A stretch of 64,000 bases of DNA from positions 7,936,001 through 8,000,000 of the forward strand of contig OZ059896.1 of the NCBI GenBank assembly GCA_964057225.1, in the 5' to 3' direction. A program made the translations under genes and the position numbers. Numbering within the stretch: the first letter of the stretch is position 1; the number at the start of each line of letters is the position of its first letter. The notes below the pieces were generated by a model. The model worked only from the letters and a program-made list of their open reading frames with translations. It made no database searches and was not told where the DNA came from. The DNA is from Auanema rhodensis. Taxonomy: Eukaryota > Animalia > Nematoda. Shown here piece after piece: positions 1 to 64,000 of this stretch.

Positions 1-1
1 T

Positions 2-6095: not shown

Positions 6096-6160
6096 GTAGT
6101 TTTAGTTGTCTCTTGTATGTTAGTTTCTACTATGAAATATGCGAATACGATATATTCGTA

Positions 6161-6233
6161 GCTTCCGTAGCGCAGTAGGCAGCGCGTCAGTCTCATAATC
6201 TGAAGGTCGTGAGTTCGAGCCTCACCGGGAGCA
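6161..6233 (+). tRNA. tRNA-Met(CAT), elongator; first copy, representative of the array
   Basis: Cloverleaf: acceptor GCTTCCG/CGGGAGC+A, D-stem GCGC/GCGC, anticodon arm TCAGT-CTCATAA-TCTGA, T-arm GTGAG-TTCGAGC-CTCAC. G1:C72, TTC T-loop and T31/T39 indicate eukaryotic elongator Met. No encoded CCA. Confidence 0.96.
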
Positions 6234-6236
6234 ATC

Positions 6237-6241
6237 TTTTT
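6237..6241 (+). terminator. Pol III oligo-T terminator (present after each tRNA copy)
   Basis: A T4-T5 run begins 3 nt after the discriminator (GCA-ATC-TTTT[T]) and is followed by a second T4. Confidence 0.75.
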
Positions 6242-6927
6242 CGTTTTCCTCGATTTAATCTGATACAAAAGATATTCTTTCATTTTTATAGTTTTGGTTG
6301 TCATTGTATGTTCGTAGCTACTAAGAAATATGCGAATACGATATATTCGTAGCTTCCGTAGCGCAGTAGGCAGCGCGTCAGTCTCATAATCTGAAGGTCG
6401 TGAGTTCGAGCCTCACCGGGAGCAATCTTTTTCGTTTTCCTCGATTTAATCTGATACAAAAGATGTTATTTCATTTTTGTAGTTTTGGTTGTCTCTTGTA
6501 TGTTAGTTTCTACTAAGAAATTTGCGCACACGCTTTATTCGTAGCTTCCGTAGCGCAGTAGGCAGCGCGTCAGTCTCATAATCTGAAGGTCATGAGTTCG
6601 AGCCTCACCGGGAGCAATCTTTTCCGTTTTCCCAGATTTATTCTGATACAAAAGATGTTATTTCACTTTTGTAGTTTTGGTTGTCTCTTGTATGTTAGTT
6701 TCTACTATGAAATATGCGAATACGATATATTCGTAGCTTCCGTAGCGCAGTAGGCAGCGCGTCAGTCTCATAATCTGAAGGTCGTGAGTTCGAGCCTCAC
6801 CGGGAGCAATCTTTTCCGTTTTCCCAGATTTATTCTGATACAAAAGATGTTATTTCATTTTTGTAGTTTTGGTTGTGTCTTGTATGTTAGTTTCTACTAT
6901 GAAATATGCGAATACGATATATTCGTA

Positions 6928-7000
6928 CCTTCCGTAGCGCAGTAGGCAGCGCGTCAGTCTCATAATCTGAAGGTCGTTACTTCTAGCCTCACCGGGAGCA
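6928..7000 (+). pseudogene. tRNA-Met copy with disrupted T-arm/B-box (same allele near 7121, 9424, 10192)
   Basis: GTTACTTCTAGC replaces GTGAGTTCGAGC, breaking T-stem pairs and the GTTCRA B-box. This copy also has G1>C. Confidence 0.8.
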
Positions 7001-10000
7001 ATCTTTTCCGTTTTCCCTATATTTATTCTGATACAAAAGATGTTATTTCATTTTTGTAGTTTTGGTTGTCTCTTGTATGTTAGTTTCTACTATGAAATAT
7101 GCGAATACGATATATTCGTAGCTTCCGTAGCGCAGTAGGCAGCGCGTCAGTCTCATAATCTGAAGGTCGTTACTTCTAGCCTCACCGGGAGCAATCTTTT
7201 CCATTTTTCCTATATTTATTCTGATACAAAAGATGTTATTTCATTTTTGTAGTTTTGGTTGTCTCTTGTATGTTAGTTTCTACTAAGAAATTTGCGCACA
7301 CGCTTTATTCGTAGCTTCCGTAGCGCAGTAGGCAGCGCGTCAGTCTCATAATCTGAAGGTCGTGAGTTCGAGCCTCACCGGGAGCAATCTTTTTCGTTTT
7401 CCCAGATTTATTCTGATACAAAAGATGTTATTTCATTTTTGTAGTTTTGGTTGTCTCTTGTATGTTAGTTTCTACTATGAAATATGCGAATACGATATAT
7501 TCGTAGCTTCCGTAGCGCAGTAGGCAGCGCGTCAGTCTCATAATCTGAAGGTCGTGAGTTCGAGCCTCACCGGGAGCAATCTTTTCCGTTTTCCGAGATT
7601 TATTCTGATACAAAATATGTTATTTCATTTTTGTAATTTTGGTTGTTTCTTGTATGTTTGTAGCTACTAAGAAATTTGCGCACACTCTATATTCGTAGCT
7701 TCCATAGCGCAGTAGGCAGCGCGTCAGTCTCATAATCTGAAGGTCGTGAGTTCGAGCCTCACCGGGAGCAATCTTTTCCGTTTTCCCAGATTTTTTCTGA
7801 TACAAAAGATGTTATTTCATTTTTGTAGTTTTGGTTGTCTCTTGTATGTTAGTTTCTACTATGAAATATGCGAATACGATATATTCGTAGCTTCCGTAGC
7901 GCAGTAGGCAGCGCGTCAGTCTCATAATCTGAAGGTCGTGAGTTCGAGCCTCACCGGGAGCAATCTTTTCCGTTTTCCTCGATTTATTCTGATACAAAAG
8001 ATATTCTTTCGTTTTTGTAATTTTGGTTGTCTCTTGTATGTTCGTAGCTACTAAGAAATATGCGAATACGATTTATTCGTAGCTTCCGTAGCGCAGTAGG
8101 CAGCGCGTCAGTCTCATAATCTGAAGATCGTGAGTTCGAGCCTCACCGGGAGCAATCTTTTCCGTTTTCCTCGATTTATTCTGATACAAAATATGTTATT
8201 TCATTTTTGTAATTTTGGTTGTCTCTTGTATGTTTGTAGCTACTAAGAAATTTGCGCACACGCTATATTCGTAGCTTCCGTAGCGCAGTAGGCAGCGCGT
8301 CAGTCTCATAATCTGAAGGTCGTGAGTTCGAGCCTCACCGGGAGCAATCTTTTCCGTTTTCCCAGATTTATTCTGATACAAAAGATGTTATTTCATTTTT
8401 GTAGTTTTGGTTGTCTCTTGTATGTTAGTTTCTACTAAGAAATATGCGAATACGATATATTCGTAGCTTCCGTAGCGCAGTAGGCAGCGCGTCAGTCTCA
8501 TAATCTGAAGGTCGTGAGTTCGAGCCTCACCGGGAGCAATCGTTTTCGTTTTCCTCGATTTATTCTGATACAAAAGATATTCTTTCATTTTTATAGTTTT
8601 GGTTGTCATTGTATGTTCGTAGCTACTAAGAAATATGCGAATACGATATATTCGTAGCTTCCGTAGCGCAGTAGGCAGCGCGTCAGTCTCATAATCTGAA
8701 GGTCGTGAGTTCGAGCCTCACCGGGAGCAATCTTTTCCGTTTTCCCAGATTTATTCTGATACAAAAGATGTTATTTCATTTTTGTAGTTTTGGTTGTCTC
8801 TTGTATGTTAGTTTCTACTATGAAATATGCGAATACGATATATTCGTAGCTTCCGTAGCGCAGTAGGCAGCGCGTCAGTCTCATAATCTGAAGGTCGTGA
8901 GTTCGAGCCTCACCGGGAGCAATCTTTTTCGTTTTCCTCGATTTATTCTGATACAAAAGATATTCTTTCATTTTTATAGTTTTGGTTGTCATTGTATGTT
9001 CGTAGCTACTAAGAAATATGCGAATACGATATATTCGTAGCTTCCGTAGCGCAGTAGGCAGCGCGTCAGTCTCATAATCTGAAGGTCATGAGTTCGAGCC
9101 TCACCGGGAGCAATCTTTTCCGTTTTCCCAGATTTATTCTGATACAAAAGATGTTATATCATTTTTGTAGTTTTAGTTGTCTCTTGTATGTTAGTTTCTA
9201 CTATGAAATATGCGAATACGATATATTCGTAGCTTCCGTAGCGCAGTAGGCAGCGCGTCAGTCTCATAATCTGAAGGTCGTGAGTTCGAGCCTCACCGGG
9301 AGCAATCTTTTCCGTTTTCCGAGATTTATTCTGATACAAAATATGTTATTTCATTTTTGTAATTTTGGTTGTTTCTTGTATGTTTGTAGCTACTAAGAAA
9401 TTTGCGCACACGATATATTCGTAGCTTCCGTAGCGCAGTAGGCAGCGCGTCAGTCTCATAATCTGAAGGTCGTTACTTCTAGCCTCACCGGGAGCAATCT
9501 TTTCCGTTTTCCCTATATTTATTCTGATACAAAAGATATTCTTCCATTTTTATAGTTTTGGTTGTCATTGTATGTTCGTAGCTACTAAGAAATATGCGAA
9601 TACGATTTATTCGTAGCTTCCGTAGCGCAGTAGGCAGCGCGTCAGTCTCATAATCTGAAGGTCGTGAGTTCGAGCCTCACCGGGAGCAATCTTTTCCGTT
9701 TTCCTCGATTTATTCTGATACAAAAGATATTCTTTCATTTTTGTAATTTTGGTTGTCTCTTGTATGTTCGTAGCTACTAAGAAATATGCGAATACGATTT
9801 ATTCGCAGCTTCCGTAGCGCAGTAGGCAGCGCGTCAGTCTCATAATCTGAAGATCGTGAGTTCGAGCCTCACCGGGAGCAATCTTTTCCGTTTTCCTCGA
9901 TTTATTCTGATACAAAATATGTTATTTCATTTTTGTAATTTTGGTTGTCTCTTGTATGTTTGTAGCTACTAAGAAATTTGCGCACACGCTATATTCGTAG

Positions 10001-12198
10001 CTTCCGTAGCGCAGTAGGCAGCGCGTCAGTCTCATAATCTGAAGGTCGTGAGTTCGAGCCTCACCGGGAGCAATCTTTTCCGTTTTCCCAGATTTTTTCT
10101 GATACAAAAGATGTTATTTCATTTTTGTAGTTTTGGTTGTCTCTTGTATGTTAGTTTCTACTATGAAATATGCGAATACGATATATTCGTAGCTTCCGTA
10201 GCGCAGTAGGCAGCGCGTCAGTCTCATAATCTGAAGGTCGTTACTTCTAGCCTCACCGGGAGCAATCTTTTCCGTTTTCCCTATATTTATTCTGATACAA
10301 AAGATATTCTTCCATTTTTATAGTTTTGGTTGTCATTGTATGTTCGTAGCTACTAAGAAATATGCGAATACGATTTATTCGTAGCTTCCGTAGCGCAGTA
10401 GGCAGCGCGTCAGTCTCATAATCTGAAGGTCGTGAGTTCGAGCCTCACCGGGAGCAATCTTTTCCGTTTTCCTCGATTTATTCTGATACAAAAGATATTC
10501 TTTCATTTTTGTAATTTTGGTTGTCTCTTGTATGTTCGTAGCTACTAAGAAATATGCGAATACGATTTATTCGTAGCTTCCGTAGCGCAGTAGGCAGCGC
10601 GTCAGTCTCATAATCTGGAGATCGTGAGTTCGAGCCTCACCGGGAGCAATCTTTTCCGTTTTCCTCGATTTATTCTGATACAAAATATGTTATTTCATTT
10701 TTGTAATTTTGGTTGTCTCTTGTATGTTTGTAGCTACTAAGAAATTTGCGCACACGCTATATTCGTAGCTTCCGTAGCGCAGTAGGCAGCGCGTCAGTCT
10801 CATAATCTGAAGGTCGTGAGTTCGAGCCTCACCGGGAGCAATCTTTTCCGTTTTCCCAGATTTATTCTGATACAAAAGATGTTATTTCATTTTTGTAGTT
10901 TTGGTTGTCTCTTGTATGTTAGTTTCTACTAAGAAATATGCGAATACGATATATTCGTAGCTTCCGTAGCGCAGTAGGCAGCGCGTCAGTCTCATAATCT
11001 GAAGGTCGTGAGTTCGAGCCTCACCGGGAGCAATCGTTTTCGTTTTCCTCGATTTATTCTGATACAAAAGATATTCTTTCATTTTTATAGTTTTGGTTGT
11101 CATTGTATGTTCGTAGCTACTAAGAAATATGCGAATACGATATATTCGTAGCTTCCGTAGCGCAGTAGGCAGCGCGTCAGTCTCATAATCTGAAGGTCGT
11201 GAGTTCGAGCCTCACCGGGAGCAATCTTTTCCGTTTTCCCAGATTTATTCTGATACAAAAGATGTTATTTCATTTTTGTAGTTTTGGTTGTCTCTTGTAT
11301 GTTAGTTTCTACTATGAAATATGCGAATACGATATATTCGTAGCTTCCGTAGCGCAATAGGCAGCGCGTCAGTCTCATAATCTGAAGGTCGTGAGTTCGA
11401 GCCTCACCGGGAGCAATTTTTTTCGTTTTCCTCGATTTATTCTGATACAAAAGATATTCTTTCATTTTTATAGTTTTGGTTGTCATTGTATGTTCGTAGC
11501 TACTAAGAAATATGCGAATACGATATATTCGTAGCTTCCGTAGCGCAGTAGGCAGCGCGTCAGTCTCATAATCTGAAGGTCGTGAGTTCGAGCCTCACCG
11601 GGAGCAATCTTTTCCGTTTTCCCAGATTTATTCTGATACAAAAGATGTTATTTCATTTTTGTAGTTTTGGTTGTCTCTTGTATGTTAGTTTCTACTATGA
11701 AATATGCGAATACGATATATTCGTAGCTTCCGTAGCGCAGTAGGCAGCGCGTCAGTCTCATAATCTGAAGGTCGTGAGTTCGAGCCTCACCGGGAGCAAT
11801 CTTTTTCGTTTTCCTCGATTTATTCTGATACAAAAGATATTCTTTCATTTTTATAGTTTTGGTTGTCATTGTATGTTCGTAGCTACTAAGAAATATGCGA
11901 ATACGATATATTCGTAGCTTCCGTAGCGCAGTAGGCAGCGCGTCAGTCTCATAATCTGAAGGTCGTGAGTTCGAGCCTCACCGGGAGCAATCTTTTCCGT
12001 TTTCCCAGATTTATTCTGATACAAAAGATGTTATATCATTTTTGTAGTTTTAGTTGTCTCTTGTATGTTCGTAGCTACTAAGAAATATGCGAATACGATA
12101 TATTCGTAGCTTCCGTAGCGCAGTAGGCAGCGCGTCAGTCTCATAATCTGAAGGTCGTGAGTTCGAGCCTCACCGGGAGCAATCTTTTTCGTTTTCCT

Positions 12199-13394
12199 TG
12201 AGGAAAGTGTTGGTGTTGATTACCTAGTACATAAGCTGAACTTTTTATAACGTTATCATCTATAAATCTAATCCTATCTCGTTGTGTTAGCTCTTAGTTC
12301 ACATATTTGAGTTTCTTCCTGGGTACATTCAACAATATCAATGAAAATACATTCAAAAAGGTAGCTGTTACCATTTCATCTACTCCAAATATACTCAGAG
12401 AGGTAACCATCGAACATATTTTGCTGTACCCTGTGCATGCGCTTGCTTTTAGTTTTAGCTTAATCTCAAAGACCTTCAATTATTTTGGTATTAGCTCCGG
12501 TCTCGGGATCCGTGAAGTTATACGTATGATTAACTGTTAAATGCCTATAATTTTGTGAAAGACTATTAATACTCCCGTATGCTCTCCAACAATCACTCAG
12601 TATATTAATTTCACGCTCAATACAATTAATAACGCAGCTGTTTAAGGTTTCTGCACTTCTATCAGGAACAGCAGAAAACCCATTGCGCTGGCCTAATACT
12701 ACCCGCATTAAACTTTCTGCTAGAAACTAACGTTTCATCAAATTCAACAGTCAAACTGGGATCTCCAATCTTTGGAGAATGCTTCAAGAGTTTAAATGCA
12801 CAAACTTTTCTTATATATTTATTATAATCCACGGCTGTTTTGCAAGAGCTTATCCCTAACTCATATTGACAGAACTTTACAGTAGTGTATTCCTTGCTCC
12901 AGCCGTGTACGAAAAAAATGAACTTGGTATAACCGAATTTTGAGCCTAAAATGTTTGTGTTGATTATATTCAGATTTTAACTTCATGAATTGATGAAATG
13001 TTCCTTTTTTTGTTAAAATTTCTCTTCTACAGTCTTTTCTAATATACCTTCACTTATTTCGAGCAGCAGAAAGACTCATTTGTCGTGTTCATCGGTCACC
13101 TTCGTTAGTTTGAGAGATTATTTCCTTCTCTTGCAGGAATTGGATGGCATCAGCTTCAGTACGATGTCTCTTTTTTGGAGCGAACATTTAGACGAAGTAT
13201 GGTTGATAATGCAGAAGCAATGACTAATAATGATTCAATTTTTATATCATAATATAATCAAGTTTTATTATACTTATTACAGACATTTACAAAGTAATAT
13301 TCGCTTTCATAATTCATTGTGAATGTAATGAAATATTATTCCTTAATAGAAAGAGACCCCTCCCCCCCAAAGCCCTAGATACGGAAAAAGAACC
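12199..13394 (-). mobile_element. Defective Merlin (IS1595/ISXO2-like DDE) DNA transposon fragment, long form 1196 bp, copy 1
   Basis: Frameshifted peptides KIGDPSLTVEFDETLVSSRKFNAG...QWVF and VPDRSAETL...ILSDCWRAY...HLTVNHTYNFTDPETGANTKIIEGL match Merlin/ISXO2 transposase motifs. One GG-starting end (GGTTCTTTTTCCGTATCTAGG on minus); no matching repeat at the other end. Confidence 0.85.
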
Positions 13395-45193: not shown

Positions 45194-45477
45194 TGAGGAA
45201 AGTGTTGGTGTTGATTACCTAGTACATAAGCTAAACTTTTTATAACGTTATCATCTATAAATCTAATCCTATCTCGTTGTGTTAGCTCTTAGTTCACATA
45301 TTTGAGTTTCTTCCTGGGTACATTCAACAATATCAATAAAAATACATTCAAAAAGGTAGCTGTTACCATTTCATCTACTCCAAATATACTCGAGAGGTAA
45401 CCATCCAACATATTTTGCTGTACCCTGTGCATGCGCTTGCTTTTAGTTTTAGCTAAATCGCAAAGACCTTCAATTAT
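45194..45477 (-). mobile_element. Merlin fragment, truncated copy 13, fused to retroviral gag fragment
   Basis: Same left junction (ttttcct|tgaggaaag); homology stops at ...accttcaattat. Confidence 0.85.
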
Positions 45478-45479
45478 CA

Positions 45480-46840: not shown

Positions 46841-46852
46841 TTCGTAGTGTTC

Positions 46853-46875
46853 GAGTTCGAGCCTCACCGGGAGCA
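46853..46875 (+). pseudogene. 3' remnant of a tRNA-Met broken in the T-arm
   Basis: GAGTTCGAGCCTCACCGGGAGCA only; the 5' part is replaced by the gag fragment. Confidence 0.9.
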
Positions 46876-48338
46876 ATCTTTTCCGTTTTCCGAGATATAT
46901 TCTGATACAAAAGATGTTATTTCATTTTTGTAGTTTTGGTTGTCTCTTGTATGTTAGTTTCTACTATGAAATTTGCGCACACGCTGTATTTGTAGCTTCC
47001 GTAGCGCAGTAGGCAGCGCGTCAGTCTCATAATCTGAAGGTCGTGAGTTCGAGCCTCACCGGGAGCAATCTTTTCCGTTTTCCGAGATATATTCTGATAC
47101 AAAAGATGTTATTTCACTTTTGTAGTTTTGGTTGTCTCTTGTATGTTAGTTTCTAATATGAAATATGCGAATACGATATATTCGTAGCTTCCGTAGCGCA
47201 GTAGGCAGCGCGTCAGTCTCATAATCTGAAGGTCGTGAGTTTGAGCTTCACCGGGAGCAATCTTTTCCGTTTTCCGAGATATATTCTGATACAAAAGATG
47301 TTATTTCATTTTTGTAGTTTTGGTTGTCTCTTGTATGTTAGTTTCTACTATGAAATATGCGCACACGCTGTATTTGTAGCTTCCGTAGCGCAGTAGGCAG
47401 CGCGTCAGTCTCATAATCTGAAGGTCGTGAGTTCGAGCCTCACCGGGAGCAATCTTTTCCGTTTTCCGAGATATATTCTGATACAAAAGATGTTATTTCA
47501 CTTTTGTAGTTTTGGTTGTCTCTTGTATGTTAGTTTCTACTATGAAATATGCGAATACGATATATTCGTAGCTTCCGTAGCGCAGTAGGCAGCGCGTCAG
47601 TCTCATAATCTGAAGGTCGTGAGTTCGAGCCTCACCGGGAGCAATCTTTTCCGTTTTCCGAGATATATTCTGATACAAAAGATGTTATTTCATTTTTGTA
47701 GTTTTGGTTGTCTCTTGTATGTTAGTTTCTACTATGAAATATGCGAATACGATATATTCGTAGCTTCCGTAGCGCAGTAGGCAGCGCGTCAGTCTCATAA
47801 TCTGAAGGTCGTGAGTTCGAGCCTCACCGGGAGCAATCTTTTCCGTTTTCCGAGATATATTCTGATACAAAAGATGTTATTTCACTTTTGTAGTTTTGGT
47901 TGTCTCTTGTATGTTAGTTTCTACTATGAAATATGCGAATACGATATATTCGTAGCTTCCGTAGCGCAGTAGGCAGCGCGTCAGTCTCATAATCTGAAGG
48001 TCGTGAGTTCGAGCCTCACCGGGAGCAATCTTTTCCGTTTTCCGAGATATATTCTGATACAAAAGATGTTATTTCACTTTTGTAGTTTTGGTTGTCTCTT
48101 GTATGTTAGTTTCTACTATGAAATATGCGAATACGATATATTCGTAGCTTCCGTAGCGCAGTAGGCAGCGCGTCAGTCTCATAATCTGAAGGTCGTGAGT
48201 TCGAGCCTCACCGGGAGCAATCTTTTCCGTTTTCCGAGATATATTCTGATACAAAAGATGTTATTTCATTTTTGTAGTTTTGGTTGTCTCTTGTATGTTA
48301 GTTTCTACTATGAAATATGCGAATACGATATATTCGTA

Positions 48339-48411
48339 GCTTCCGTAGCGAGGTAGGAAGCGCGTCAGTCTCATAATCTGAAGGTCGTGAGTTCGAGCCT
48401 CACCGGGAGCA
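48339..48411 (+). tRNA. tRNA-Met D-arm variant allele (first of many in the right-hand domain); function doubtful
   Basis: GCGAGGTAGGAAGCGC replaces GCGCAGTAGGCAGCGC (C13A, A14G and a D-loop C>A). Confidence 0.6.
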
Positions 48412-51400
48412 ATCTTTTCCGTTTTCCCAGATTTATTCTGATACAAAAGATGTTATTTCATTTTTGTAGTTTTGGTTGTCTCTTGTATGTTCGTAGCTAC
48501 TAAGAAATTTGTGCACACGCTATATTCGTAGCTTCCGTAGCGCAGTAGGCAGCGCGTCAGTCTCATAATCTGAAGGTCGTGAGTTCGAGCCTCACCGGGA
48601 GCAATCTTTTCCGTTTTCCGAGATATATTCTGATACAAAAGATGTTATTTCACTTTTGTAGTTTTGGTTGTCTCTTGTATGTTAGTTTCTACTATGAAAT
48701 ATGCGAATACGATATATTCGTAGCTTCCGTAGCGCAGTAGGCAGCGCGTCAGTCTCATAATCTGAAGGTCGTGAGTTCGAGCCTCACCGGGAGCAATCTT
48801 TTCCGTTTTCCGAGATATATTCTGATACAAAAGATGTTATTTCACTTTTGTAGTTTTGGTTGTCTCTTGTATGTTAGTTTCTACTATGAAATATGCGAAT
48901 ACGATATATTCGTAGCTTCCGTAGCGCAGTAGGCAGCGCGTCAGTCTCATAATCTGAAGGTCGTGAGTTCGAGCCTCACCGGGAGCAATCTTTTCCGTTT
49001 TCCGAGATATATTCTGATACAAAAGATGTTAATTCATTTTTGTAGTTTTGGTTGTCTCTTGTATGTTAGTTTCTACTATGAAATATGCGAATACGATATA
49101 TTCGTAGCTTCCGTAGCGAGGTAGGAAGCGCGTCAGTCTCATAATCTGAAGGTCGTGAGTTCGAGCCTCACCGGGAGCAATCTTTTCCGTTTTCCCAGAT
49201 TTATTCTGATACAAAAGATGTTATTTCATTTTTGTAGTTTTGGTTGTCTCTTGTATGTTCGTAGCTACTAAGAAATTTGTGCACACGCTATATTCGTAGC
49301 TTCCGTAGCGCAGTAGGCAGCGCGTCAGTCTCATAATCTGAAGGTCGTGAGTTCGAGCCTCACCGGGAGCAATCTTTTCCGTTTTCCGAGATATATTCTG
49401 ATACAAAAGATGTTATTTCATTTTTGTAGTTTTGGTTGTCTCTTGTATGTTAGTTTCTACTATGAAATTTGCGCACACGCTGTATTTGTAGCTTCCGTAG
49501 CGCAGTAGGCAGCGCGTCAGTCTCATAATCTGAAGGTCGTGAGTTCGAGCCTCACCGGGAGCAATCTTTTCCGTTTTCCGAGATATATTCTGATACAAAA
49601 GATGTTATTTCACTTTTGTAGTTTTGGTTGTCTCTTGTATGTTAGTTTCTACTATGAAATATGCGAATACGATATATTCGTAGCTTCCGTAGCGCAGTAG
49701 GCAGCGCGTCAGTCTCATAATCTGAAGGTCGTGAGTTCGAGCCTCACCGGGAGCAATCTTTTCCGTTTTCCGAGATATATTCTGATACAAAAGATGTTAT
49801 TTCACTTTTGTAGTTTTGGTTGTCTCTTGTATGTTAGTTTCTACTATGAAATATGCGAATACGATATATTCGTAGCTTCCGTAGCGCAGTAGGCAGCGCG
49901 TCAGTCTCATAATCTGAAGGTCGTGAGTTCGAGCCTCACCGGGAGCAATCTTTTCCGTTTTCCGAGATATATTCTGATACAAAAGATGTTAATTCATTTT
50001 TGTAGTTTTGGTTGTCTCTTGTATGTTAGTTTCTACTATGAAATATGCGAATACGATATATTCGTAGCTTCCGTAGCGAGGTAGGAAGCGCGTCAGTCTC
50101 ATAATCTGAAGGTCGTGAGTTCGAGCCTCACCGGGAGCAATCTTTTCCGTTTTCCCAGATTTATTCTGATACAAAAGATGTTATTTCATTTTTGTAGTTT
50201 TGGTTGTCTCTTGTATGTTCGTAGCTACTAAGAAATTTGTGCACACGCTATATTCGTAGCTTCCGTAGCGCAGTAGGCAGCGCGTCAGTCTCATAATCTG
50301 AAGGTCGTGAGTTCGAGCCTCACCGGGAGCAATCTTTTCCGTTTTCCGAGATATATTCTGATACAAAAGATGTTATTTCATTTTTGTAGTTTTGGTTGTC
50401 TCTTGTATGTTAGTTTCTACTATGAAATTTGCGCACACGCTGTATTTGTAGCTTCCGTAGCGCAGTAGGCAGCGCGTCAGTCTCATAATCTGAAGGTCGT
50501 GAGTTCGAGCCTCACCGGGAGCAATCTTTTCCGTTTTCCGAGATATATTCTGATACAAAAGATGTTATTTCACTTTTGTAGTTTTGGTTGTCTCTTGTAT
50601 GTTAGTTTCTACTATGAAATATGCGAATACGATATATTCGTAGCTTCCGTAGCGCAGTAGGCAGCGCGTCAGTCTCATAATCTGAAGGTCGTGAGTTCGA
50701 GCCTCACCGGGAGCAATCTTTTCCGTTTTCCGAGATATATTCTGATACAAAAGATGTTATTTCATTTTTGTAGTTTTGGTTGTCTCTTGTATGTTAGTTT
50801 CTACTATGAAATTTGCGCACACGCTGTATTTGTAGCTTCCGTAGCGCAGTAGGCAGCGCGTCAGTCTCATAATCTGAAGGTCGTGAGTTCGAGCCTCACC
50901 GGGAGCAATCTTTTCCGTTTTCCGAGATATATTCTGATACAAAAGATGTTATTTCACTTTTGTAGTTTTGGTTGTCTCTTGTATGTTAGTTTCTACTATG
51001 AAATATGCGAATACGATATATTCGTAGCTTCCGTAGCGCAGTAGGCAGCGCGTCAGTCTCATAATCTGAAGGTCGTGAGTTCGAGCCTCACCGGGAGCAA
51101 TCTTTTCCGTTTTCCGAGATATATTCTGATACAAAAGATGTTATTTCACTTTTGTAGTTTTGGTTGTCTCTTGTATGTTAGTTTCTACTATGAAATATGC
51201 GAATACGATATATTCGTAGCTTCCGTAGCGCAGTAGGCAGCGCGTCAGTCTCATAATCTGAAGGTCGTGAGTTCGAGCCTGACCGGGAGCAATCTTTTCC
51301 GTTTTCCGAGATATATTCTGATACAAAAGATGTTATTTCATTTTTGTAGTTTTGGTTGTCTCTTGTATGTTAGTTTCTACTATGAAATATGCGAATACGA

Positions 51401-54400
51401 TATATTCGTAGCTTCCGTAGCGAGGTAGGAAGCGCGTCAGTCTCATAATCTGAAGGTCGTGAGTTCGAGCCTCACCGGGAGCAATCTTTTCCGTTTTCCC
51501 AGATTTATTCTGATACAAAAGATGTTATTTCACTTTTGTAGTTTTGGTTGTCTCTTGTATGTTAGTTTCTACTATGAAATATGCGAATACGATATATTCG
51601 TAGCTTCCGTAGCGCAGTAGGCAGCGCGTCAGTCTCATAATCTGAAGGTCGTGAGTTCGAGCCTCACCGGGAGCAATCTTTTCCGTTTTCAGAGATATAT
51701 TCTGATACAAAAGATGTTATTTCACTTTTGTAGTTTTGGTTGTCTCTTGTATGTTAGTTTCTACTATGAAATTTGCGCACACGCTGTATTTGTAGCTTCC
51801 GTAGCGCAGTAGGCAGCGCGTCAGTCTCATAATCTGAAGGTCGTGAGTTCGAGCCTCACCGGGAGCAATCTTTTCCGTTTTCCGAGATATATTCTGATAC
51901 AAAAGATGTTATTTCACTTTTGTAGTTTTGGTTGTCTCTTGTATGTTAGTTTCTACTATGAAATATGCGAATACGATATATTCGTAGCTTCCGTAGCGCA
52001 GTAGGCAGCGCGTCAGTCTCATAATCTGAAGGTCGTGAGTTCGAGCCTCACCGGGAGCAATCTTTTCCGTTTTCCGAGATATATTCTGATACAAAAGATG
52101 TTATTTCATTTTTGTAGTTTTGGTTGTCTCTTGTATGTTAGTTTCTACTATGAAATATGCGAATACGATATATTCGTAGCTTCCGTAGCGAGGTAGGAAG
52201 CGCGTCAGTCTCATAATCTGAAGGTCGTGAGTTCGAGCCTCACCGGGAGCAATCTTTTCCGTTTTCCGAGATATATTCTGATACAAAAGATGTTAATTCA
52301 TTTTTGTAGTTTTGGTTGTCTCTTGTATGTTAGTTTCTACTATGAAATATGCGAATACGATATATTCGTAGCTTCCGTAGCGAGGTAGGAAGCGCGTCAG
52401 TCTCATAATCTGAAGGTCGTGAGTTCGAGCCTCACCGGGAGCAATCTTTTCCGTTTTCCCAGATTTATTCTGATACAAAAGATGTTATTTCATTTTTGTA
52501 GTTTTGGTTGTCTCTTGTATGTTCGTAGCTACTAAGAAATTTGTGCACACGCTATATTCGTAGCTTCCGTAGCGCAGTAGGCAGCGCGTCAGTCTCATAA
52601 TCTGAAGGTCGTGAGTTCGAGCCTCACCGGGAGCAATCTTTTCCGTTTTCCGAGATATATTCTGATACAAAAGATGTTATTTCATTTTTGTAGTTTTGGT
52701 TGTCTCTTGTATGTTAGTTTCTACTATGAAATTTGCGCACACGCTGTATTTGTAGCTTCCGTAGCGCAGTAGGCAGCGCGTCAGTCTCATAATCTGAAGG
52801 TCGTGAGTTCGAGCCTCACCGGGAGCAATCTTTTCCGTTTTCCGAGATATATTCTGATACAAAAGATGTTATTTCACTTTTGTAGTTTTGGTTGTCTCTT
52901 GTATGTTAGTTTCTACTATGAAATATGCGAATACGATATATTCGTAGCTTCCGTAGCGCAGTAGGCAGCGCGTCAGTCTCATAATCTGAAGGTCGTGAGT
53001 TCGAGCCTCACCGGGAGCAATCTTTTCCGTTTTCCGAGATATATTCTGATACAAAAGATGTTATTTCACTTTTGTAGTTTTGGTTGTCTCTTGTATGTTA
53101 GTTTCTACTATGAAATATGCGAATACGATATATTCGTAGCTTCCGTAGCGCAGTAGGCAGCGCGTCAGTCTCATAATCTGAAGGTCGTGAGTTCGAGCCT
53201 CACCGGGAGCAATCTTTTCCGTTTTCCGAGATATATTCTGATACAAAAGATGTTAATTCATTTTTGTAGTTTTGGTTGTCTCTTGTATGTTAGTTTCTAC
53301 TATGAAATATGCGAATACGATATATTCGTAGCTTCCGTAGCGAGGTAGGAAGCGCGTCAGTCTCATAATCTGAAGGTCGTGAGTTCGAGCCTCACCGGGA
53401 GCAATCTTTTCCGTTTTCCCAGATTTATTCTGATACAAAAGATGTTATTTCATTTTTGTAGTTTTGGTTGTCTCTTGTATGTTCGTAGCTACTAAGAAAT
53501 TTGTGCACACGCTATATTCGTAGCTTCCGTAGCGCAGTAGGCAGCGCGTCAGTCTCATAATCTGAAGGTCGTGAGTTCGAGCCTCACCGGGAGCAATCTT
53601 TTCCGTTTTCCGAGATATATTCTGATACAAAAGATGTTATTTCATTTTTGTAGTTTTGGTTGTCTCTTGTATGTTAGTTTCTACTATGAAATTTGCGCAC
53701 ACGCTGTATTTGTAGCTTCCGTAGCGCAGTAGGCAGCGCGTCAGTCTCATAATCTGAAGGTCGTGAGTTCGAGCCTCACCGGGAGCAATCTTTTCCGTTT
53801 TCCGAGATATATTCTGATACAAAAGATGTTATTTCACTTTTGTAGTTTTGGTTGTCTCTTGTATGTTAGTTTCTACTATGAAATATGCGAATACGATATA
53901 TTCGTAGCTTCCGTAGCGCAGTAGGCAGCGCGTCAGTCTCATAATCTGAAGGTCGTGAGTTCGAGCCTCACCGGGAGCAATCTTTTCCGTTTTCCGAGAT
54001 ATATTCTGATACAAAAGATGTTATTTCATTTTTGTAGTTTTGGTTGTCTCTTGTATGTTAGTTTCTACTATGAAATTTGCGCACACGCTGTATTTGTAGC
54101 TTCCGTAGCGCAGTAGGCAGCGCGTCAGTCTCATAATCTGAAGGTCGTGAGTTCGAGCCTCACCGGGAGCAATCTTTTCCGTTTTCCGAGATATATTCTG
54201 ATACAAAAGATGTTATTTCACTTTTGTAGTTTTGGTTGTCTCTTGTATGTTAGTTTCTACTATGAAATATGCGAATACGATATATTCGTAGCTTCCGTAG
54301 CGCAGTAGGCAGCGCGTCAGTCTCATAATCTGAAGGTCGTGAGTTCGAGCCTCACCGGGAGCAATCTTTTCCGTTTTCCGAGATATATTCTGATACAAAA

Positions 54401-57400
54401 GATGTTATTTCACTTTTGTAGTTTTGGTTGTCTCTTGTATGTTAGTTTCTACTATGAAATATGCGAATACGATATATTCGTAGCTTCCGTAGCGCAGTAG
54501 GCAGCGCGTCAGTCTCATAATCTGAAGGTCGTGAGTTCGAGCCTGACCGGGAGCAATCTTTTCCGTTTTCCGAGATATATTCTGATACAAAAGATGTTAT
54601 TTCATTTTTGTAGTTTTGGTTGTCTCTTGTATGTTAGTTTCTACTATGAAATATGCGAATACGATATATTCGTAGCTTCCGTAGCGAGGTAGGAAGCGCG
54701 TCAGTCTCATAATCTGAAGGTCGTGAGTTCGAGCCTCACCGGGAGCAATCTTTTCCGTTTTCCCAGATTTATTCTGATACAAAAGATGTTATTTCACTTT
54801 TGTAGTTTTGGTTGTCTCTTGTATGTTAGTTTCTACTATGAAATATGCGAATACGATATATTCGTAGCTTCCGTAGCGCAGTAGGCAGCGCGTCAGTCTC
54901 ATAATCTGAAGGTCGTGAGTTCGAGCCTCACCGGGAGCAATCTTTTCCGTTTTCAGAGATATATTCTGATACAAAAGATGTTATTTCACTTTTGTAGTTT
55001 TGGTTGTCTCTTGTATGTTAGTTTCTACTATGAAATTTGCGCACACGCTGTATTTGTAGCTTCCGTAGCGCAGTAGGCAGCGCGTCAGTCTCATAATCTG
55101 AAGGTCGTGAGTTCGAGCCTCACCGGGAGCAATCTTTTCCGTTTTCCGAGATATATTCTGATACAAAAGATGTTATTTCACTTTTGTAGTTTTGGTTGTC
55201 TCTTGTATGTTAGTTTCTACTATGAAATATGCGAATACGATATATTCGTAGCTTCCGTAGCGCAGTAGGCAGCGCGTCAGTCTCATAATCTGAAGGTCGT
55301 GAGTTCGAGCCTCACCGGGAGCAATCTTTTCCGTTTTCCGAGATATATTCTGATACAAAAGATGTTATTTCATTTTTGTAGTTTTGGTTGTCTCTTGTAT
55401 GTTAGTTTCTACTATGAAATATGCGAATACGATATATTCGTAGCTTCCGTAGCGAGGTAGGAAGCGCGTCAGTCTCATAATCTGAAGGTCGTGAGTTCGA
55501 GCCTCACCGGGAGCAATCTTTTCCGTTTTCCCAGATTTATTCTGATACAAAAGATGTTATTTCATTTTTGTAGTTTTGGTTGTCTCTTGTATGTTCGTAG
55601 CTACTAAGAAATTTGTGCACACGCTATATTCGTAGCTTCCGTAGCGCAGTAGGCAGCGCGTCAGTCTCATAATCTGAAGGTCGTGAGTTCGAGCCTCACC
55701 GGGAGCAATCTTTTCCGTTTTCCGAGATATATTCTGATACAAAAGATGTTATTTCATTTTTGTAGTTTTGGTTGTCTCTTGTATGTTAGTTTCTACTATG
55801 AAATTTGCGCACACGCTGTATTTGTAGCTTCCGTAGCGCAGTAGGCAGCGCGTCAGTCTCATAATCTGAAGGTCGTGAGTTCGAGCCTCACCGGGAGCAA
55901 TCTTTTCCGTTTTCCGAGATATATTCTGATACAAAAGATGTTATTTCACTTTTGTAGTTTTGGTTGTCTCTTGTATGTTAGTTTCTACTATGAAATATGC
56001 GAATACGATATATTCGTAGCTTCCGTAGCGCAGTAGGCAGCGCGTCAGTCTCATAATCTGAAGGTCGTGAGTTCGAGCCTCACCGGGAGCAATCTTTTCC
56101 GTTTTCCGAGATATATTCTGATACAAAAGATGTTATTTCACTTTTGTAGTTTTGGTTGTCTCTTGTATGTTAGTTTCTACTATGAAATATGCGAATACGA
56201 TATATTCGTAGCTTCCGTAGCGCAGTAGGCAGCGCGTCAGTCTCATAATCTGAAGGTCGTGAGTTCGAGCCTGACCGGGAGCAATCTTTTCCGTTTTCCG
56301 AGATATATTCTGATACAAAAGATGTTATTTCATTTTTGTAGTTTTGGTTGTCTCTTGTATGTTAGTTTCTACTATGAAATATGCGAATACGATATATTCG
56401 TAGCTTCCGTAGCGAGGTAGGAAGCGCGTCAGTCTCATAATCTGAAGGTCGTGAGTTCGAGCCTCACCGGGAGCAATCTTTTCCGTTTTCCCAGATTTAT
56501 TCTGATACAAAAGATGTTATTTCACTTTTGTAGTTTTGGTTGTCTCTTGTATGTTAGTTTCTACTATGAAATATGCGAATACGATATATTCGTAGCTTCC
56601 GTAGCGCAGTAGGCAGCGCGTCAGTCTCATAATCTGAAGGTCGTGAGTTCGAGCCTCACCGGGAGCAATCTTTTCCGTTTTCCGAGATATATTCTGATAC
56701 AAAAGATGTTATTTCACTTTTGTAGTTTTGGTTGTCTCTTGTATGTTAGTTTCTACTATGAAATTTGCGCACACGCTGTATTTGTAGCTTCCGTAGCGCA
56801 GTAGGCAGCGCGTCAGTCTCATAATCTGAAGGTCGTGAGTTCGAGCCTCACCGGGAGCAATCTTTTCCGTTTTCCGAGATATATTCTGATACAAAAGATG
56901 TTATTTCACTTTTGTAGTTTTGGTTGTCTCTTGTATGTTAGTTTCTACTATGAAATATGCGAATACGATATATTCGTAGCTTCCGTAGCGCAGTAGGCAG
57001 CGCGTCAGTCTCATAATCTGAAGGTCGTGAGTTCGAGCCTCACCGGGAGCAATCTTTTCCGTTTTCCGAGATATATTCTGATACAAAAGATGTTATTTCA
57101 TTTTTGTAGTTTTGGTTGTCTCTTGTATGTTAGTTTCTACTATGAAATATGCGAATACGATATATTCGTAGCTTCCGTAGCGAGGTAGGAAGCGCGTCAG
57201 TCTCATAATCTGAAGGTCGTGAGTTCGAGCCTCACCGGGAGCAATCTTTTCCGTTTTCCCAGATTTATTCTGATACAAAAGATGTTATTTCATTTTTGTA
57301 GTTTTGGTTGTCTCTTGTATGTTCGTAGCTACTAAGAAATTTGTGCACACGCTATATTCGTAGCTTCCGTAGCGCAGTAGGCAGCGCGTCAGTCTCATAA

Positions 57401-60400
57401 TCTGAAGGTCGTGAGTTCGAGCCTCACCGGGAGCAATCTTTTCCGTTTTCCGAGATATATTCTGATACAAAAGATGTTATTTCATTTTTGTAGTTTTGGT
57501 TGTCTCTTGTATGTTAGTTTCTACTATGAAATTTGCGCACACGCTTTATTTGTAGCTTCCGTAGCGCAGTAGGCAGCGCGTCAGTCTCATAATCTGAAGG
57601 TCGTGAGTTCGAGCCTCACCGGGAGCAATCTTTTCCGTTTTCCGAGATATATTCTGATACAAAAGATGTTATTTCACTTTTGTAGTTTTGGTTGTCTCTT
57701 GTATGTTAGTTTCTACTATGAAATATGCGAATACGATATATTCGTAGCTTCCGTAGCGCAGTAGGCAGCGCGTCAGTCTCATAATCTGAAGGTCGTGAGT
57801 TCGAGCCTCACCGGGAGCAATCTTTTCCGTTTTCCGAGATATATTCTGATACAAAAGATGTTATTTCATTTTTGTAGTTTTGGTTGTCTCTTGTATGTTA
57901 GTTTCTACTATGAAATATGCGAATACGATATATTCGTAGCTTCCGTAGCGCAGTAGGCAGCGCGTCAGTCTCATAATCTGAAGGTCGTGAGTTCGAGCCT
58001 CACCGGGAGCAATCTTTTCCGTTTTCCCAGATTTATTCTGATACAAAAGATGTTATTTCATTTTTGTAGTTTTGGTTGTCTCTTGTATGTTAGTTTCTAC
58101 TATGAAATATGCGAATACGATATATTCGTAGCTTCCGTAGCGAGGTAGGAAGCGCGTCAGTCTCATAATCTGAAGGTCGTGAGTTCGAGCCTCACCGGGA
58201 GCAATCTTTTCCGTTTTCCCTATATTTATTCTGATACAAAAGATGTTATTTCATTTTTGTAGTTTTGGTTGTCTCTTGTATGTTCGTAGCTACTAAGAAA
58301 TTTGTGCACACGCTATATTCGTAGCTTCCGTAGCGCAGTAGGCAGCGCGTCAGTCTCATAATCTGAAGGTCGTGAGTTCGAGCCTCACCGGGAGCAATCT
58401 TTTCCGTTTTCCGAGATATATTCTGATACAAAAGATGTTATTTCATTTTTGTAGTTTTGGTTGTCTCTTGTATGTTCGTAGCTACTAAGAAATTTGCGCA
58501 CACGCTGTATTTGTAGCTTCCGTAGCACAGTAGGCAGCGCGTCAGTCTCATAATCTGAAGGTCGTGAGTTCGAGCCTCACCGGGAGCAATCTTTTCCGTT
58601 TTCTCAGATTTATTCTGATACAAAAGATGTTATTTCATTTTTGTAGTTTTGGTTGTCTCTTGTATGTTAGTTTCTACTATGAAATATGCGAATACGATAT
58701 ATTCGTAGCTTCCGTAGCGCAGTAGGCAGCGCGTCAGTCTCATAATCTGAAGGTCGTGAGTTCGAGCCTCACCGGGAGCAATCTTTTCCGTTTTCCGAGA
58801 TATATTCTGATACAAAAGATGTTATTTCATTTTTGTAGTTTTGGTTGTCTCTTGTATGTTAGTTTCTACTATGAAATATGCGAATACGATATATTCGTAG
58901 CTTCCGTAGCGCAGTAGGCAGCGCGTCAGTCTCATAATCTGAAGGTCGTGAGTTCGAGCCTCACCGGGAGCAATCTTTTCCGTTTTCCCAGATTTATTCT
59001 GATACAAAAGATGTTATTTCATTTTTGTAGTTTTGGTTGTCTCTTGTATGTTCGTAGCTACTAAGAAATTTGCGCACACGCTGTATTCGTAGCTTCCGTA
59101 GCGCAGTAGGCAGCGCGTCAGTCTCATAATCTGAAGGTCGTGAGTTCGAGCCTCACCGGGAGCAATCTTTTCCGTTTTCCCTATATTTATTCTGATACAA
59201 AAGATGTTATTTCACTTTTGTAGTTTTGGTTGTCTCTTGTATGTTCGTAGCTACTAAGAAATTTGTGCACACGCTATATTCGTAGCTTCCGTAGCGCAGT
59301 AGGCAGCGCGTCAGTCTCATAATCTGAAGGTCGTGAGTTCGAGCCTCACCGGGAGCAATCTTTTCCGTTTTCCCAGATTTATTCTGATACAAAAGATGTT
59401 ATTTCATTTTTGTAGTTTTGGTTGTCTCTTGTATGTTAGTTTCTACTATGAAATATGCGAATACGATATATTCGTAGCTTCCGTAGCGAGGTAGGAAGCG
59501 CGTCAGTCTCATAATCTGAAGGTCGTGAGTTCGAGCCTCACCGGGAGCAATCTTTTCCGTTTTCCCTATATTTATTCTGATACAAAAGATGTTATTTCAT
59601 TTTTGTAGTTTTGGTTGTCTCTTGTATGTTCGTAGCTACTAAGAAATTTGCGCACACGCTGTATTCGTAGCTTCCGTAGCGCAGTAGGCAGCGCGTCAGT
59701 CTCATAATCTGAAGGTCGTGAGTTCGAGCCTCACCGGGAGCAATCTTTTCCGTTTTCCCTATATTTATTCTGATACAAAAGATGTTATTTCATTTTTGTA
59801 GTTTTGGTTGTCTCTTGTATGTTAGTTTCTACTATGAAATATGCGAATACGATATATTCGTAGCTTCCGTAGCGCAGTAGGCAGCGCGTCAGTCTCATAA
59901 TCTGAAGGTCGTGAGTTCGAGCCTCACCGGGAGCAATCTTTTCCGTTTTCCGAGATATATTCTGATACAAAAGATGTTATTTCACTTTTGTAGTTTTGGT
60001 TGTCTCTTGTATGTTAGTTTCTACTATGAAATATGCGAATACGATATATTCGTAGCTTCCGTAGCGAGGTAGGAAGCGCGTCAGTCTCATAATCTGAAGG
60101 TCGTGAGTTCGAGCCTCACCGGGAGCAATCTTTTCCGTTTTCCCTATATTAATTCTGATACAAAAGATGTTATTTCATTTTTGTAGTTTTGGTTGTCTCT
60201 TGTATGTTCGTAGCTACTAAGAAATTTGCGCACACGCTGTATTCGTAGCTTCCGTAGCGCAGTAGGCAGCGCGTCAGTCTCATAATCTGAAGGTCGTGAG
60301 TTCGAGCCTCACCGGGAGCAATCTTTTCCGTTTTCCGAGATATATTCTGATACAAAAGATGTTATTTCACTTTTGTAGTTTTGGTAGTCTCTTGTATGTT

Positions 60401-63400
60401 AGTTTCTACTATGAAATATGCGAATACGATATATTCGTAGCTTCCGTAGCGAGGTAGGAAGCGCGTCAGTCTCATAATCTGAAGGTCGTGAGTTCGAGCC
60501 TCACCGGGAGCAATCTTTTCCGTTTTCCCTATATTAATTCTGATACAAAAGATGTTATTTCATTTTTGTAGTTTTGGTTGTCTCTTGTATGTTCGTAGCT
60601 ACTAAGAAATTTGCGCACACGCTGTATTCGTAGCTTCCGTAGTGCAGTAGGCAGCGCGTCAGTCTCATAATCTGAAGGTCGTGAGTTCGAGCCTCACCGG
60701 GAGCAATCTTTTCCGTTTTCTCAGATTTATTCTGATACAAAAGATGTTATTTCATTTTTGTAGTTTTGGTTGTCTCTTGTATGTTCGTAGCTACTAAGAA
60801 ATTTGTGCACACGCTATATTCGTAGCTTCCGTAGCGCAGTAGGCAGCGCGTCAGTCTCATAATCTGAAGGTCGTGAGTTCGAGCCTCACCGGGAGCAATC
60901 TTTTCCGTTTTCCGAGATATATTCTGATACAAAAGATGTTATTTCACTTTTGTAGTTTTGGTTGTCTCTTGTATGTTAGTTTCTACTATGAAATATGCGA
61001 ATACGATATATTCGTAGCTTCCGTAGCGCAGTAGGCAGCGCGTCAGTCTCATAATCTGAAGGTCGTGAGTTCGAGCCTCACCGGGAGCAATCTTTTCCGT
61101 TTTCCCAGATTTATTCTAATACAAAAGATGTTATTTCATTTTTGTAGTTTTGGTTGTCTCTTGTATGTTAGTTTCTACTATGAAATATGCGAATACGATA
61201 TATTCGTAGCTTCCGTAGCGAGGTAGGAAGCGCGTCAGTCTCATAATCTGAAGGTCGTGAGTTCGAGCCTCACCGGGAGCAATCTTTTCCGTTTTCCCTA
61301 TATTAATTCTGATACAAAAGATGTTATTTCATTTTTGTAGTTTTGGTTGTCTCTTGTATGTTCGTAGCTACTAAGAAATTTGCGCACACGCTGTATTCGT
61401 AGCTTCCGTAGCGCAGTAGGCAGCGCGTCAGTCTCATAATCTGAAGGTCGTGAGTTCGAGCCTCACCGGGAGCAATCTTTTCCGTTTTCTCAGATTTATT
61501 CTGATACAAAAGATGCTATTTCATTTTTGTAGTTTTGGTTGTCTCTTGTATGTTCGTAGCTACTAAGAAATTTGTGCACACGCTATATTCGTAGCTTCCG
61601 TAGCGCAGTAGGCAGCGCGTCAGTCTCATAATCTGAAGGTCGTGAGTTCGAGCCTCACCGGGAGCAATCTTTTCCGTTTTCCCAGATTTATTCTAATACA
61701 AAAGATGTTATTTCACTTTTGTAGTTTTGGTTGTCTCTTGTATGTTAGTTTCTACTATGAAATATGCGAATACGATATATTCGTAGCTTCCGTAGCGCAG
61801 TAGGCAGCGCGTCAGTCTCATAATCTGAAGGTCGTGAGTTCGAGCCTCACCGGGAGCAATCTTTTCCGTTTTCTCAGATTTATTCTGATACAAAAGATGT
61901 TATTTCATTTTTGTAGTTTTGGTTGTCTCTTGTATGTTCGTAGCTACTAAGAAATTTGTGCACACGCTATATTCGTAGCTTCCGTAGCGCAGTAGGCAGC
62001 GCGTCAGTCTCATAATCTGAAGGTCGTGAGTTCGAGCCTCACCGGGAGCAATCTTTTCCGTTTTCCGAGATATATTCTGATACAAAAGATGTTATTTCAC
62101 TTTTGTAGTTTTGGTTGTCTCTTGTATGTTAGTTTCTACTATGAAATATGCGAATACGATATATTCGTAGCTTCCGTAGCGCAGTAGGCAGCGCGTCAGT
62201 CTCATAATCTGAAGGTCGTGAGTTCGAGCCTCACCGGGAGCAATCTTTTCCGTTTTCCCAGATTTATTCTAATACAAAAGATGTTATTTCATTTTTGTAG
62301 TTTTGGTTGTCTCTTGTATGTTAGTTTCTACTATGAAATATGCGAATACGATATATTCGTAGCTTCCGTAGCGAGGTAGGAAGCGCGTCAGTCTCATAAT
62401 CTGAAGGTCGTGAGTTCGAGCCTCACCGGGAGCAATCTTTTCCGTTTTCCCTATATTAATTCTGATACAAAAGATGTTATTTCATTTTTGTAGTTTTGGT
62501 TGTCTCTTGTATGTTCGTAGCTACTAAGAAATTTGCGCACACGCTGTATTCGTAGCTTCCGTAGCGCAGTAGGCAGCGCGTCAGTCTCATAATCTGAAGG
62601 TCGTGAGTTCGAGCCTCACCGGGAGCAATCTTTTCCGTTTTCTCAGATTTATTCTGATACAAAAGATGTTATTTCATTTTTGTAGTTTTGGTTGTCTCTT
62701 GTATGTTCGTAGCTACTAAGAAATTTGTGCACACGCTATATTCGTAGCTTCCGTAGCGCAGTAGGCAGCGCGTCAGTCTCATAATCTGAAGGTCGTGAGT
62801 TCGAGCCTCACCGGGAGCAATCTTTTCCGTTTTCCCAGATTTATTCTAATACAAAAGATGTTATTTCACTTTTGTAGTTTTGGTTGTCTCTTGTATGTTA
62901 GTTTCTACTATGAAATATGCGAATACGATATATTCGTAGCTTCCGTAGCGAGGTAGGAAGCGCGTCAGTCTCATAATCTGAAGGTCGTGAGTTCGAGCCT
63001 CACCGGGAGCAATCTTTTCCGTTTTCCCTATATTAATTCTGATACAAAAGATGTTATTTCATTTTTGTAGTTTTGGTTGTCTCTTGTATGTTCGTAGCTA
63101 CTAAGAAATTTGTGCACACGCTATATTCGTAGCTTCCGTAGCGCAGTAGGCAGCGCGTCAGTCTCATAATCTGAAGGTCGTGAGTTCGAGCCTCACCGGG
63201 AGCAATCTTTTCCGTTTTCCGAGATATATTCTGATACAAAAGATGTTATTTCACTTTTGTAGTTTTGGTTGTCTCTTGTATGTTAGTTTCTACTATGAAA
63301 TATGCGAATACGATATATTCGTAGCTTCCGTAGCGCAGTAGGCAGCGCGTCAGTCTCATAATCTGAAGGTCGTGAGTTCGAGCCTCACCGGGAGCAATCT

Positions 63401-63900
63401 TTTCCGTTTTCCCAGATTTATTCTAATACAAAAGATGTTATTTCATTTTTGTAGTTTTGGTTGTCTCTTGTATGTTAGTTTCTACTATGAAATATGCGAA
63501 TACGATATATTCGTAGCTTCCGTAGCGAGGTAGGAAGCGCGTCAGTCTCATAATCTGAAGGTCGTGAGTTCGAGCCTCACCGGGAGCAATCTTTTCCGTT
63601 TTCCCTATATTAATTCTGATACAAAAGATGTTATTTCATTTTTGTAGTTTTGGTTGTCTCTTGTATGTTCGTAGCTACTAAGAAATTTGCGCACACGCTG
63701 TATTCGTAGCTTCCGTAGCGCAGTAGGCAGCGCGTCAGTCTCATAATCTGAAGGTCGTGAGTTCGGGCCTCACCGGGAGCAATCTTTTCCGTTTTCTCAG
63801 ATTTATTCTGATACAAAAGATGTTATTTCATTTTTGTAGTTTTGGTTGTCTCTTGTATGTTCGTAGCTACTAAGAAATTTGTGCACACGCTATATTCGTA

Positions 63901-63973
63901 GCTTCCGTAGCGCAGTAGGCAGCGCGTCAGTCTCATAATCTGAAGGTCGTGAGTTCGAGCCTCACCGGGAGCA
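63901..63973 (+). tRNA. tRNA-Met(CAT), last complete copy in the window
   Basis: Identical to the consensus at 6161-6233. Confidence 0.95.
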
Positions 63974-64000
63974 ATCTTTTCCGTTTTCCGAGATATATTC

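Follow-up and report, generated by a model that had tools for sequence, protein, structure and literature searches.

Introduction

Tandem arrays of transfer RNA (tRNA) genes are known in few eukaryotes, and whether such an array is used or is a mere satellite has rarely been settled. In Xenopus laevis, a 3.18-kb tDNA repeat comprises eight tRNA genes, and the oocyte-type 5S genes also form arrays. Large sets of tRNA genes are found on zebrafish chromosome 4 (PMC11417395), and a boundary function has been proposed for the human tRNA repeat at 1q23.3 (PMC4041453). The subject of the present work is an array of elongator tRNA-Met genes in the nematode Auanema rhodense (A. rhodensis). It lies on contig C4 (OZ059896.1) of a 180,911,798-base assembly and was studied in a stretch of 64,000 nucleotides, C4:7,936,001–8,000,000 (the window), and in the 200 kb around it (7.86–8.06 Mb). 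It shares with Xenopus and zebrafish the presence of hundreds to thousands of tandem genes for RNA polymerase III (Pol III); in those two animals a demand of the oocyte or embryo has been proposed and stage-specific use has been documented. We consider, with a probability of about 0.6, that the C4 locus is a real Pol III multigene array of elongator tRNA-Met, used under purifying selection.

The tRNA arrays of Entamoeba resemble the C4 array in being tandem and of satellite scale, and in having spacers that evolve fast beside genes that are conserved (PMC2652664). They differ from it in that they hold nearly all the tRNA genes of the organism, with up to five genes per unit and microsatellite-like spacers (PMC2652664), whereas the C4 array coexists with dispersed copies. 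Like the C4 array, the Ser-Tyr-Tyr clusters of Arabidopsis thaliana are tandem sets of tRNA genes, numbering from dozens to hundreds and apparently intact, that lie beside heterochromatin and duplicate dispersed genes (PMC12308677). The three genes of their unit serve two amino acids; DNA methylation keeps the unit silent, and it becomes active again in root tips (PMC12308677). In the C4 array, the unit contains one gene. Rhabditid nematodes are generally regarded as being without cytosine methylation.

A preprint on the A. rhodense genome describes a 180.9-Mb germline assembly with 19,554 annotated tRNAs, 215 of them as pseudogenes, and reports that 61% of the genome is eliminated from body cells (bioRxiv 10.64898/2026.08.27.747507). 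One sentence in it states that some of the tandem repeats are arrayed copies of 5S ribosomal RNA (rRNA), of several tRNA loci and of U2 (bioRxiv 10.64898/2026.08.27.747507). Those arrays are set in eliminated DNA, whereas the C4 cluster, which is not discussed there, appears to lie in a gene-bearing arm. A genome-wide amplification of tRNA genes is already on record for this species, and the C4 array exemplifies it. The existence of tRNA arrays in the genome is already public; what the sequence analysis adds here is evidence suggestive of selection on the RNA and of a likely retention of the cluster in the soma.

Copy Number and Identity of the tRNA Genes

Copies were counted with ARAGORN and by matching, with two short anchors and BLAST, and the repeat periods were obtained with Tandem Repeats Finder. 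ARAGORN called 217 tRNA-Met(CAT) genes in the window, all on the plus strand, between positions 6161 and 63973. The two anchors found 221 copies, of which 158 were identical. The four copies found by the anchors and missed by ARAGORN carried a triple linked substitution in the T arm; one T-arm-variant copy scored 40.5 bits against the Rfam model RF00005 (threshold 29 bits), compared with 66.2 bits for the canonical copy. From gene to gene, the spacing was 192 bp in 142 cases, 191 bp in 53 and 193 bp in 12 (207 in total), and the other 13 spacings were of 1258, 1408 or 1891 bp. The periods given by Tandem Repeats Finder agreed with this unit of 191–193 bp. An earlier note on this DNA, made from the letters alone, had claimed some 220 or more elongator tRNA-Met genes in units of about 192 bp, most of them with an intact gene and a T run, and these counts bear it out. 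The note had also described an array of at least 58 kb. The array is real, but its 57.9 kb are not continuous: they are broken 13 times, and the tRNA units amount to about 42 kb.

Eukaryotic initiator tRNAs are marked by A1:U72, by A54 and by three consecutive G:C pairs at 29–31:39–41. The canonical copy, read from the sequence, has G1:C72 and T54, and its anticodon stem lacks the three successive G:C pairs; the array tRNA is therefore an elongator, and an initiator identity was rejected. The canonical sequence holds an internal A box (positions 8–19) and an internal B box (positions 52–62). A short interspersed element (SINE)-like, tRNA-derived repeat was also considered and rejected, as the gene is complete, at 73 nt, and followed by a terminator in every copy.

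The array passes both ends of the window. The whole cluster covers 126 kb (C4:7,897,062–8,022,935) and consists of a long part on the plus strand between a minus-strand arm and a short end that is also on the minus strand. It comprises 361 full-length copies, 275 of them canonical, and one truncated copy. The CAT anticodon was retained in all 361, and all 361 were followed by a terminator, a T run of 4–7 beginning 2–5 nt past the gene. An assembly artefact was rejected as the probable source of the array, since its higher-order structure is rich in variants and the assembly is based on HiFi reads.

A 21-nt core of the tRNA occurred 368 times in the genome. Single genes dispersed on C1, C3, C4 and C6, six in all, were identical to the array majority at 73 of 73 positions, and their flanks were unrelated. 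The tRNA was likewise 73/73 in a family of six copies with a period of 287 bp, in which the spacer was strongly diverged, rearranged and partly duplicated. Where the cluster ends on the right, units of this 287-bp period are flanked by two blocks of a 45-bp tandem repeat, 99% identical, with 12.6 and 14 copies (C4:8,020,631–8,023,606; segment L011:631–1196 and 2978–3606).

Distribution of Variants between tRNA and Spacer

With 361 linked copies, diverged spacer lineages and six dispersed references, the C4 locus lends itself to a test in the style of McDonald and Kreitman. The variant spectrum was taken from 328 aligned complete units, each made of the tRNA (73 sites) and its downstream spacer (120 sites). 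Singletons were present at 23 of the 73 tRNA sites and at 28 of the 120 spacer sites, a difference that was not significant. Variants reaching at least 5% of the units were found at 3/73 tRNA sites versus 29/120 spacer sites (Fisher p = 2e-4), and a two-by-two test of rare and common variants in tRNA and spacer gave an odds ratio of 7.9 (p = 6e-4). The nucleotide diversity per site was 0.012 in the tRNA and 0.085 in the spacer. Equal diversity in the two parts, which the earlier note had linked to a neutral satellite, was not observed. The note had seen many variants in the spacer and had suggested selection or biased homogenization on the gene and not on the spacer; the spacer diversity bears out the first remark, and the strong depletion of common, and not of rare, variants in the tRNA supports the second.

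Because linkage and co-amplification hold for all sites of a unit, neutral mutations would be expected to spread equally often whether they fall in the tRNA or in the spacer. Every unit of the array had a recognisable tRNA, and the alignment was therefore not biased toward conserved copies. Clustering of the spacers gave six subfamilies, the consensus spacers of which differed at 6–19 of the 120 sites. The six varied at 23 spacer columns and at 3 tRNA columns, the latter belonging to one linked haplotype, and the canonical tRNA was found exactly in five of the six. Mutation seems to strike the tRNA freely, and altered tRNAs seem only rarely to rise in frequency. Since common variants are nearly absent from the tRNA, and diverged spacers accompany identical tRNAs, purifying selection on the RNA is the likely cause. 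The array fits the pattern of concerted evolution combined with purifying selection, as in 5S rDNA, with a gene more uniform than its spacer and new mutations equal in both.

The depletion was not confined to the promoter. It was also seen at the 50 tRNA sites that belong to neither the A nor the B box, with common variants at 1/50 (p = 3e-4), and 3 of 42 distinct substitutions were in the anticodon arm, a comparison made after seeing the data and to be read with care. These observations indicate a constraint, not a tight one, that would act on the RNA and beyond the promoter boxes. They bear on the proposal of a chromosome-structural locus, which the earlier note had raised as one dense in TFIIIC and condensin. 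Such a locus would owe its maintenance to dense binding by TFIIIC, condensin or cohesin, or to a boundary activity, rather than to its RNA. In its favour, most copies have intact A and B boxes, and a boundary function has been proposed for human tRNA repeats (PMC4041453). However, the 50 sites outside the boxes were as strongly constrained as the boxes, and the sole variant that has spread is in the A box. Constraint was strongest in the anticodon arm, for which no promoter role is known. In its purely structural form the proposal is weakened by the reach of the constraint, and we regard it as highly improbable.

C13A, A14G and C20A, the three common variants of the tRNA, form one haplotype, with three changes within 8 nt in the A box and D arm. 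One complex mutation, spread within a higher-order repeat, would seem to account for it. Several observations of this kind weigh against a used and selected array. The haplotype alters the invariant A14 and breaks the 13–22 pair, and its presence in 20 of about 104 units of the right sub-array (about 19%) points to loose selection. A stem pair was broken in 52 of the 361 copies. The GC content was 59% in the tRNA and about 31% in the spacer; with this contrast, some of the depletion in the tRNA could be an effect of GC-biased gene conversion, which here is inseparable from selection. In addition, the array adjoins a 43-kb satellite with a 200-bp period and is riddled with mobile elements, a heterochromatin-like setting, and comparable tRNA clusters of plants are silenced in most tissues (PMC12308677).

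Most of these points can be read in favour of a neutral or selfish satellite that happens to have a tRNA in its monomer. Unequal exchange would expand it within an island of heterochromatin that is poorly policed, and it would be mostly silent, its uniformity being due to homogenization, possibly GC-biased, or to youth. Such an origin would accord with the neighbouring satellite, with the defective A-box variant, with the amplification of a transposon fragment 21 times as a passenger (described below) and with the equal density of singletons in tRNA and spacer. The authors of the preprint see the repeat blocks of eliminated DNA as accumulating under weak selection (bioRxiv 10.64898/2026.08.27.747507). 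The satellite reading accounts poorly, however, for an eight-fold depletion of common variants in the tRNA despite the linkage and co-amplification of the sites of a unit. The same is true of spacer subfamilies up to 19/120 sites apart with identical tRNA, of the unchanged tRNA of the 287-bp family and of the anticodon and terminator kept in every full-length copy. A neutral satellite is a possible explanation in our opinion, though a doubtful one.

Position of the Cluster Relative to Eliminated DNA

Each autosome of A. rhodense has two terminal blocks and one central block that are eliminated, with exactly four break sites, located at the edges of these large blocks (bioRxiv 10.64898/2026.08.27.747507). 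The gene-bearing regions of C4 were mapped by searches for the protein-kinase and RRM domain families. Matches to the two families were found at 6.6–10.9 Mb and 13.2–16.2 Mb, on both sides of a gap at approximately 10.9–13.2 Mb. The locus made of the cluster and the adjoining satellite (7.85–8.02 Mb) is well within the left gene-bearing arm of this autosome. It appears to occupy neither of the germline-restricted locations, from a break site to the chromosome end or in the central block. On the right, host genes start 1.5 kb past the last tRNA with an MFS-domain exon, followed at most 15 kb from the cluster end by exons with Fic and with JmjN/JmjC (histone-demethylase-like) domains (C4:8.031–8.037 Mb; L012:1245–1583 and 4769–7248). 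Together, the exons with these domains span 8.024–8.037 Mb.

In Oscheius, the elimination break motif has a GGC/GCC core. In the region 7.86–8.06 Mb, the palindrome GGC-N3-GCC, which is the Oscheius core and not the 29-bp motif of A. rhodense itself, was absent except for a weak instance in the long terminal repeats (LTRs) of the retrovirus-like element that enters the window from the left. Both LTRs of this element carry a 29-nt imperfect palindrome with 10/14 pairs and a GGC-N3-GCC core, which may be due to chance (window 6008–6036; C4:7,930,312–7,930,340). Position 16,502,174, a break on "chromosome 5" in the preprint, was read on contig C5 and displayed no convincing palindrome there, so that contig numbers may differ from chromosome numbers.

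The earlier note had also suggested that the array might be germline-limited DNA. It would then be a store of tRNA genes for oocytes and very early embryos, removed afterwards by programmed DNA elimination. The eliminated DNA does hold arrays of several tRNA loci (bioRxiv 10.64898/2026.08.27.747507), and the locus consists almost purely of repeat over about 170 kb. Against this stand its place in the 6.6–10.9 Mb gene-bearing arm, away from the terminal blocks and the central gap, the proximity of host genes, the confinement of the break-like palindrome to LTRs and the restriction of break sites to four per autosome at large-block edges. Because it lies inside a gene-bearing arm, beside ordinary host genes, the cluster is probably not germline-limited, and we find a germline store improbable. 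From its position and the number of break sites given in the preprint, the cluster is probably retained in body cells.

Organization of the Array and Its Insertions

The features of the window are listed in Table 1. Two sub-arrays were distinguished. In the left one, two types of spacer often alternated, giving a dimer of 383 bp, and higher-order blocks of 4–29 units were separated by an amplified insert. The right one runs on beyond the window to C4:8,002,903, for a total of 104 units. The C13A/A14G/C20A haplotype recurred in it every 1–7 units, a higher-order pattern visible at window positions 48339–64000. The density of tRNA in the right sub-array was 38% (73/192 bp; window 46995–64000), more than the "always <20% per 10 kb window" of the preprint for loci of non-coding RNA. 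Either the annotation of the preprint undercounts the array or the statement is limited to eliminated regions.

Table 1. Features of the 64,000-nucleotide window, in window coordinates.
Feature	Position	Strand	Remarks
Canonical elongator tRNA-Met(CAT), reference copy	6161–6233	+	73 nt, A and B boxes intact, T run after; ARAGORN; RF00005, 66.2 bits
Left sub-array	6096–45192	+	128 tRNA-Met units of 191–192 bp; repeat and tRNA calls
Right sub-array	46853–64000	+	uninterrupted 192–193 bp units, ~95% matching, 89 tRNA genes in window; repeat and tRNA calls
IS1595/ISXO2-like DDE transposon fragment, decayed, ~1.2 kb, first of 12 copies	12194–13390	−	below-cut-off Pfam PF12762 match
IS1595-like fragment, other 11 copies	starts near 15509, 18259, 24068, 26092, 29071, 31670, 34418, 36591, 39188, 41021, 43004		
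Composite insert	45193–46852		~285 bp IS1595-like start (45193–45477) and 1.36-kb retrovirus-like piece
LTR retrovirus-like element, ~12.07 kb, right part	1–6095		in array spacer; not array proper

The breaks of the array in the window corresponded to 12 copies of an insert of 1.07–1.22 kb and to one composite insert of 1.66 kb. The former starts approximately 24 bp downstream of a tRNA and contains disrupted reading frames on the minus strand. An 80-aa open reading frame (ORF) of the insert matched the ISXO2/IS1595-type DDE transposase domain PF12762 with E = 1.4e-5 and 25.6 bits, just below the cut-off of 27 bits. The copies were 97.7–100% identical to one another, and five had a 148-bp internal deletion in common. 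The minus-strand arm, left of the window, had nine more copies in inverted orientation, making 21 in total. The near-identity of the copies, the common deletion and the inverted set point to one old insertion amplified as a passenger in higher-order repeats. Part of the array has apparently been duplicated later in inverted orientation.

The 1.36-kb piece of the composite insert was 99% identical to positions 2447–3807 of the window, within the retrovirus-like element, and the insert ended within a tRNA, at tRNA position 51. Its 477-aa ORF had no Pfam domain. The retrovirus-like element itself is located 65 bp upstream of the next tRNA, between tRNA genes 12,258 bp apart, and is bordered by a 4-bp target duplication, GTAG (window 6092–6099; C4:7,930,030). 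A second, unrelated LTR element of about 9.37 kb starts with TG, ends with CA, has the target duplication GTTAT and is located about 79 bp upstream of a tRNA (segments L009, ~2900, and L010, ~2260). These two unrelated elements occupy the same region of the spacer.

The left neighbour of the cluster is the 200-bp satellite, which extends over about 43 kb. A kinship of this satellite with the tRNA unit was considered and rejected, the matches being chance ones of 8–9 nucleotides. Relatives of the satellite were observed at C4:7,209,563–7,216,670, at 15.58–15.61 Mb on C6 and at 14.67 Mb on C7, with about 614 motif matches in total; as it has relatives on other contigs, the satellite is not chromosome-specific.

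Discussion

We propose the following history for a used tRNA-Met array. Each unit of about 192 bp is a self-contained gene, with A and B box promoters, a CAU cloverleaf and a T-run terminator. The array probably originated from one ordinary dispersed tRNA-Met gene and grew by unequal crossing-over and segmental duplication, which carried the transposon fragment along and yielded the inverted arm. New mutations arise equally often in tRNA and spacer, and units with an altered tRNA rarely spread, so that the tRNA stays identical to that of the dispersed genes while the spacers diverge. From the variant spectrum, use of the RNA product appears probable, the bulk supply of tRNA-Met being its most likely purpose.

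A wider view may be taken, which we hold to be unlikely as a whole. The locus would be a somatically retained, selected, high-dosage tRNA-Met factory within a lineage-specific amplification of tRNA genes of about 30-fold. Some arrays would be kept in the soma and others eliminated, giving two sets of tRNA genes, one for the germline and early embryo and one for the soma, set by DNA elimination and not by transcriptional control. The arrays would also be preferred landing pads for mobile elements of several families. In a species that eliminates 61% of its genome, the comparison of tRNA arrays that are kept with those that are eliminated bears on whether elimination serves to give germline and soma different doses of housekeeping RNA genes.

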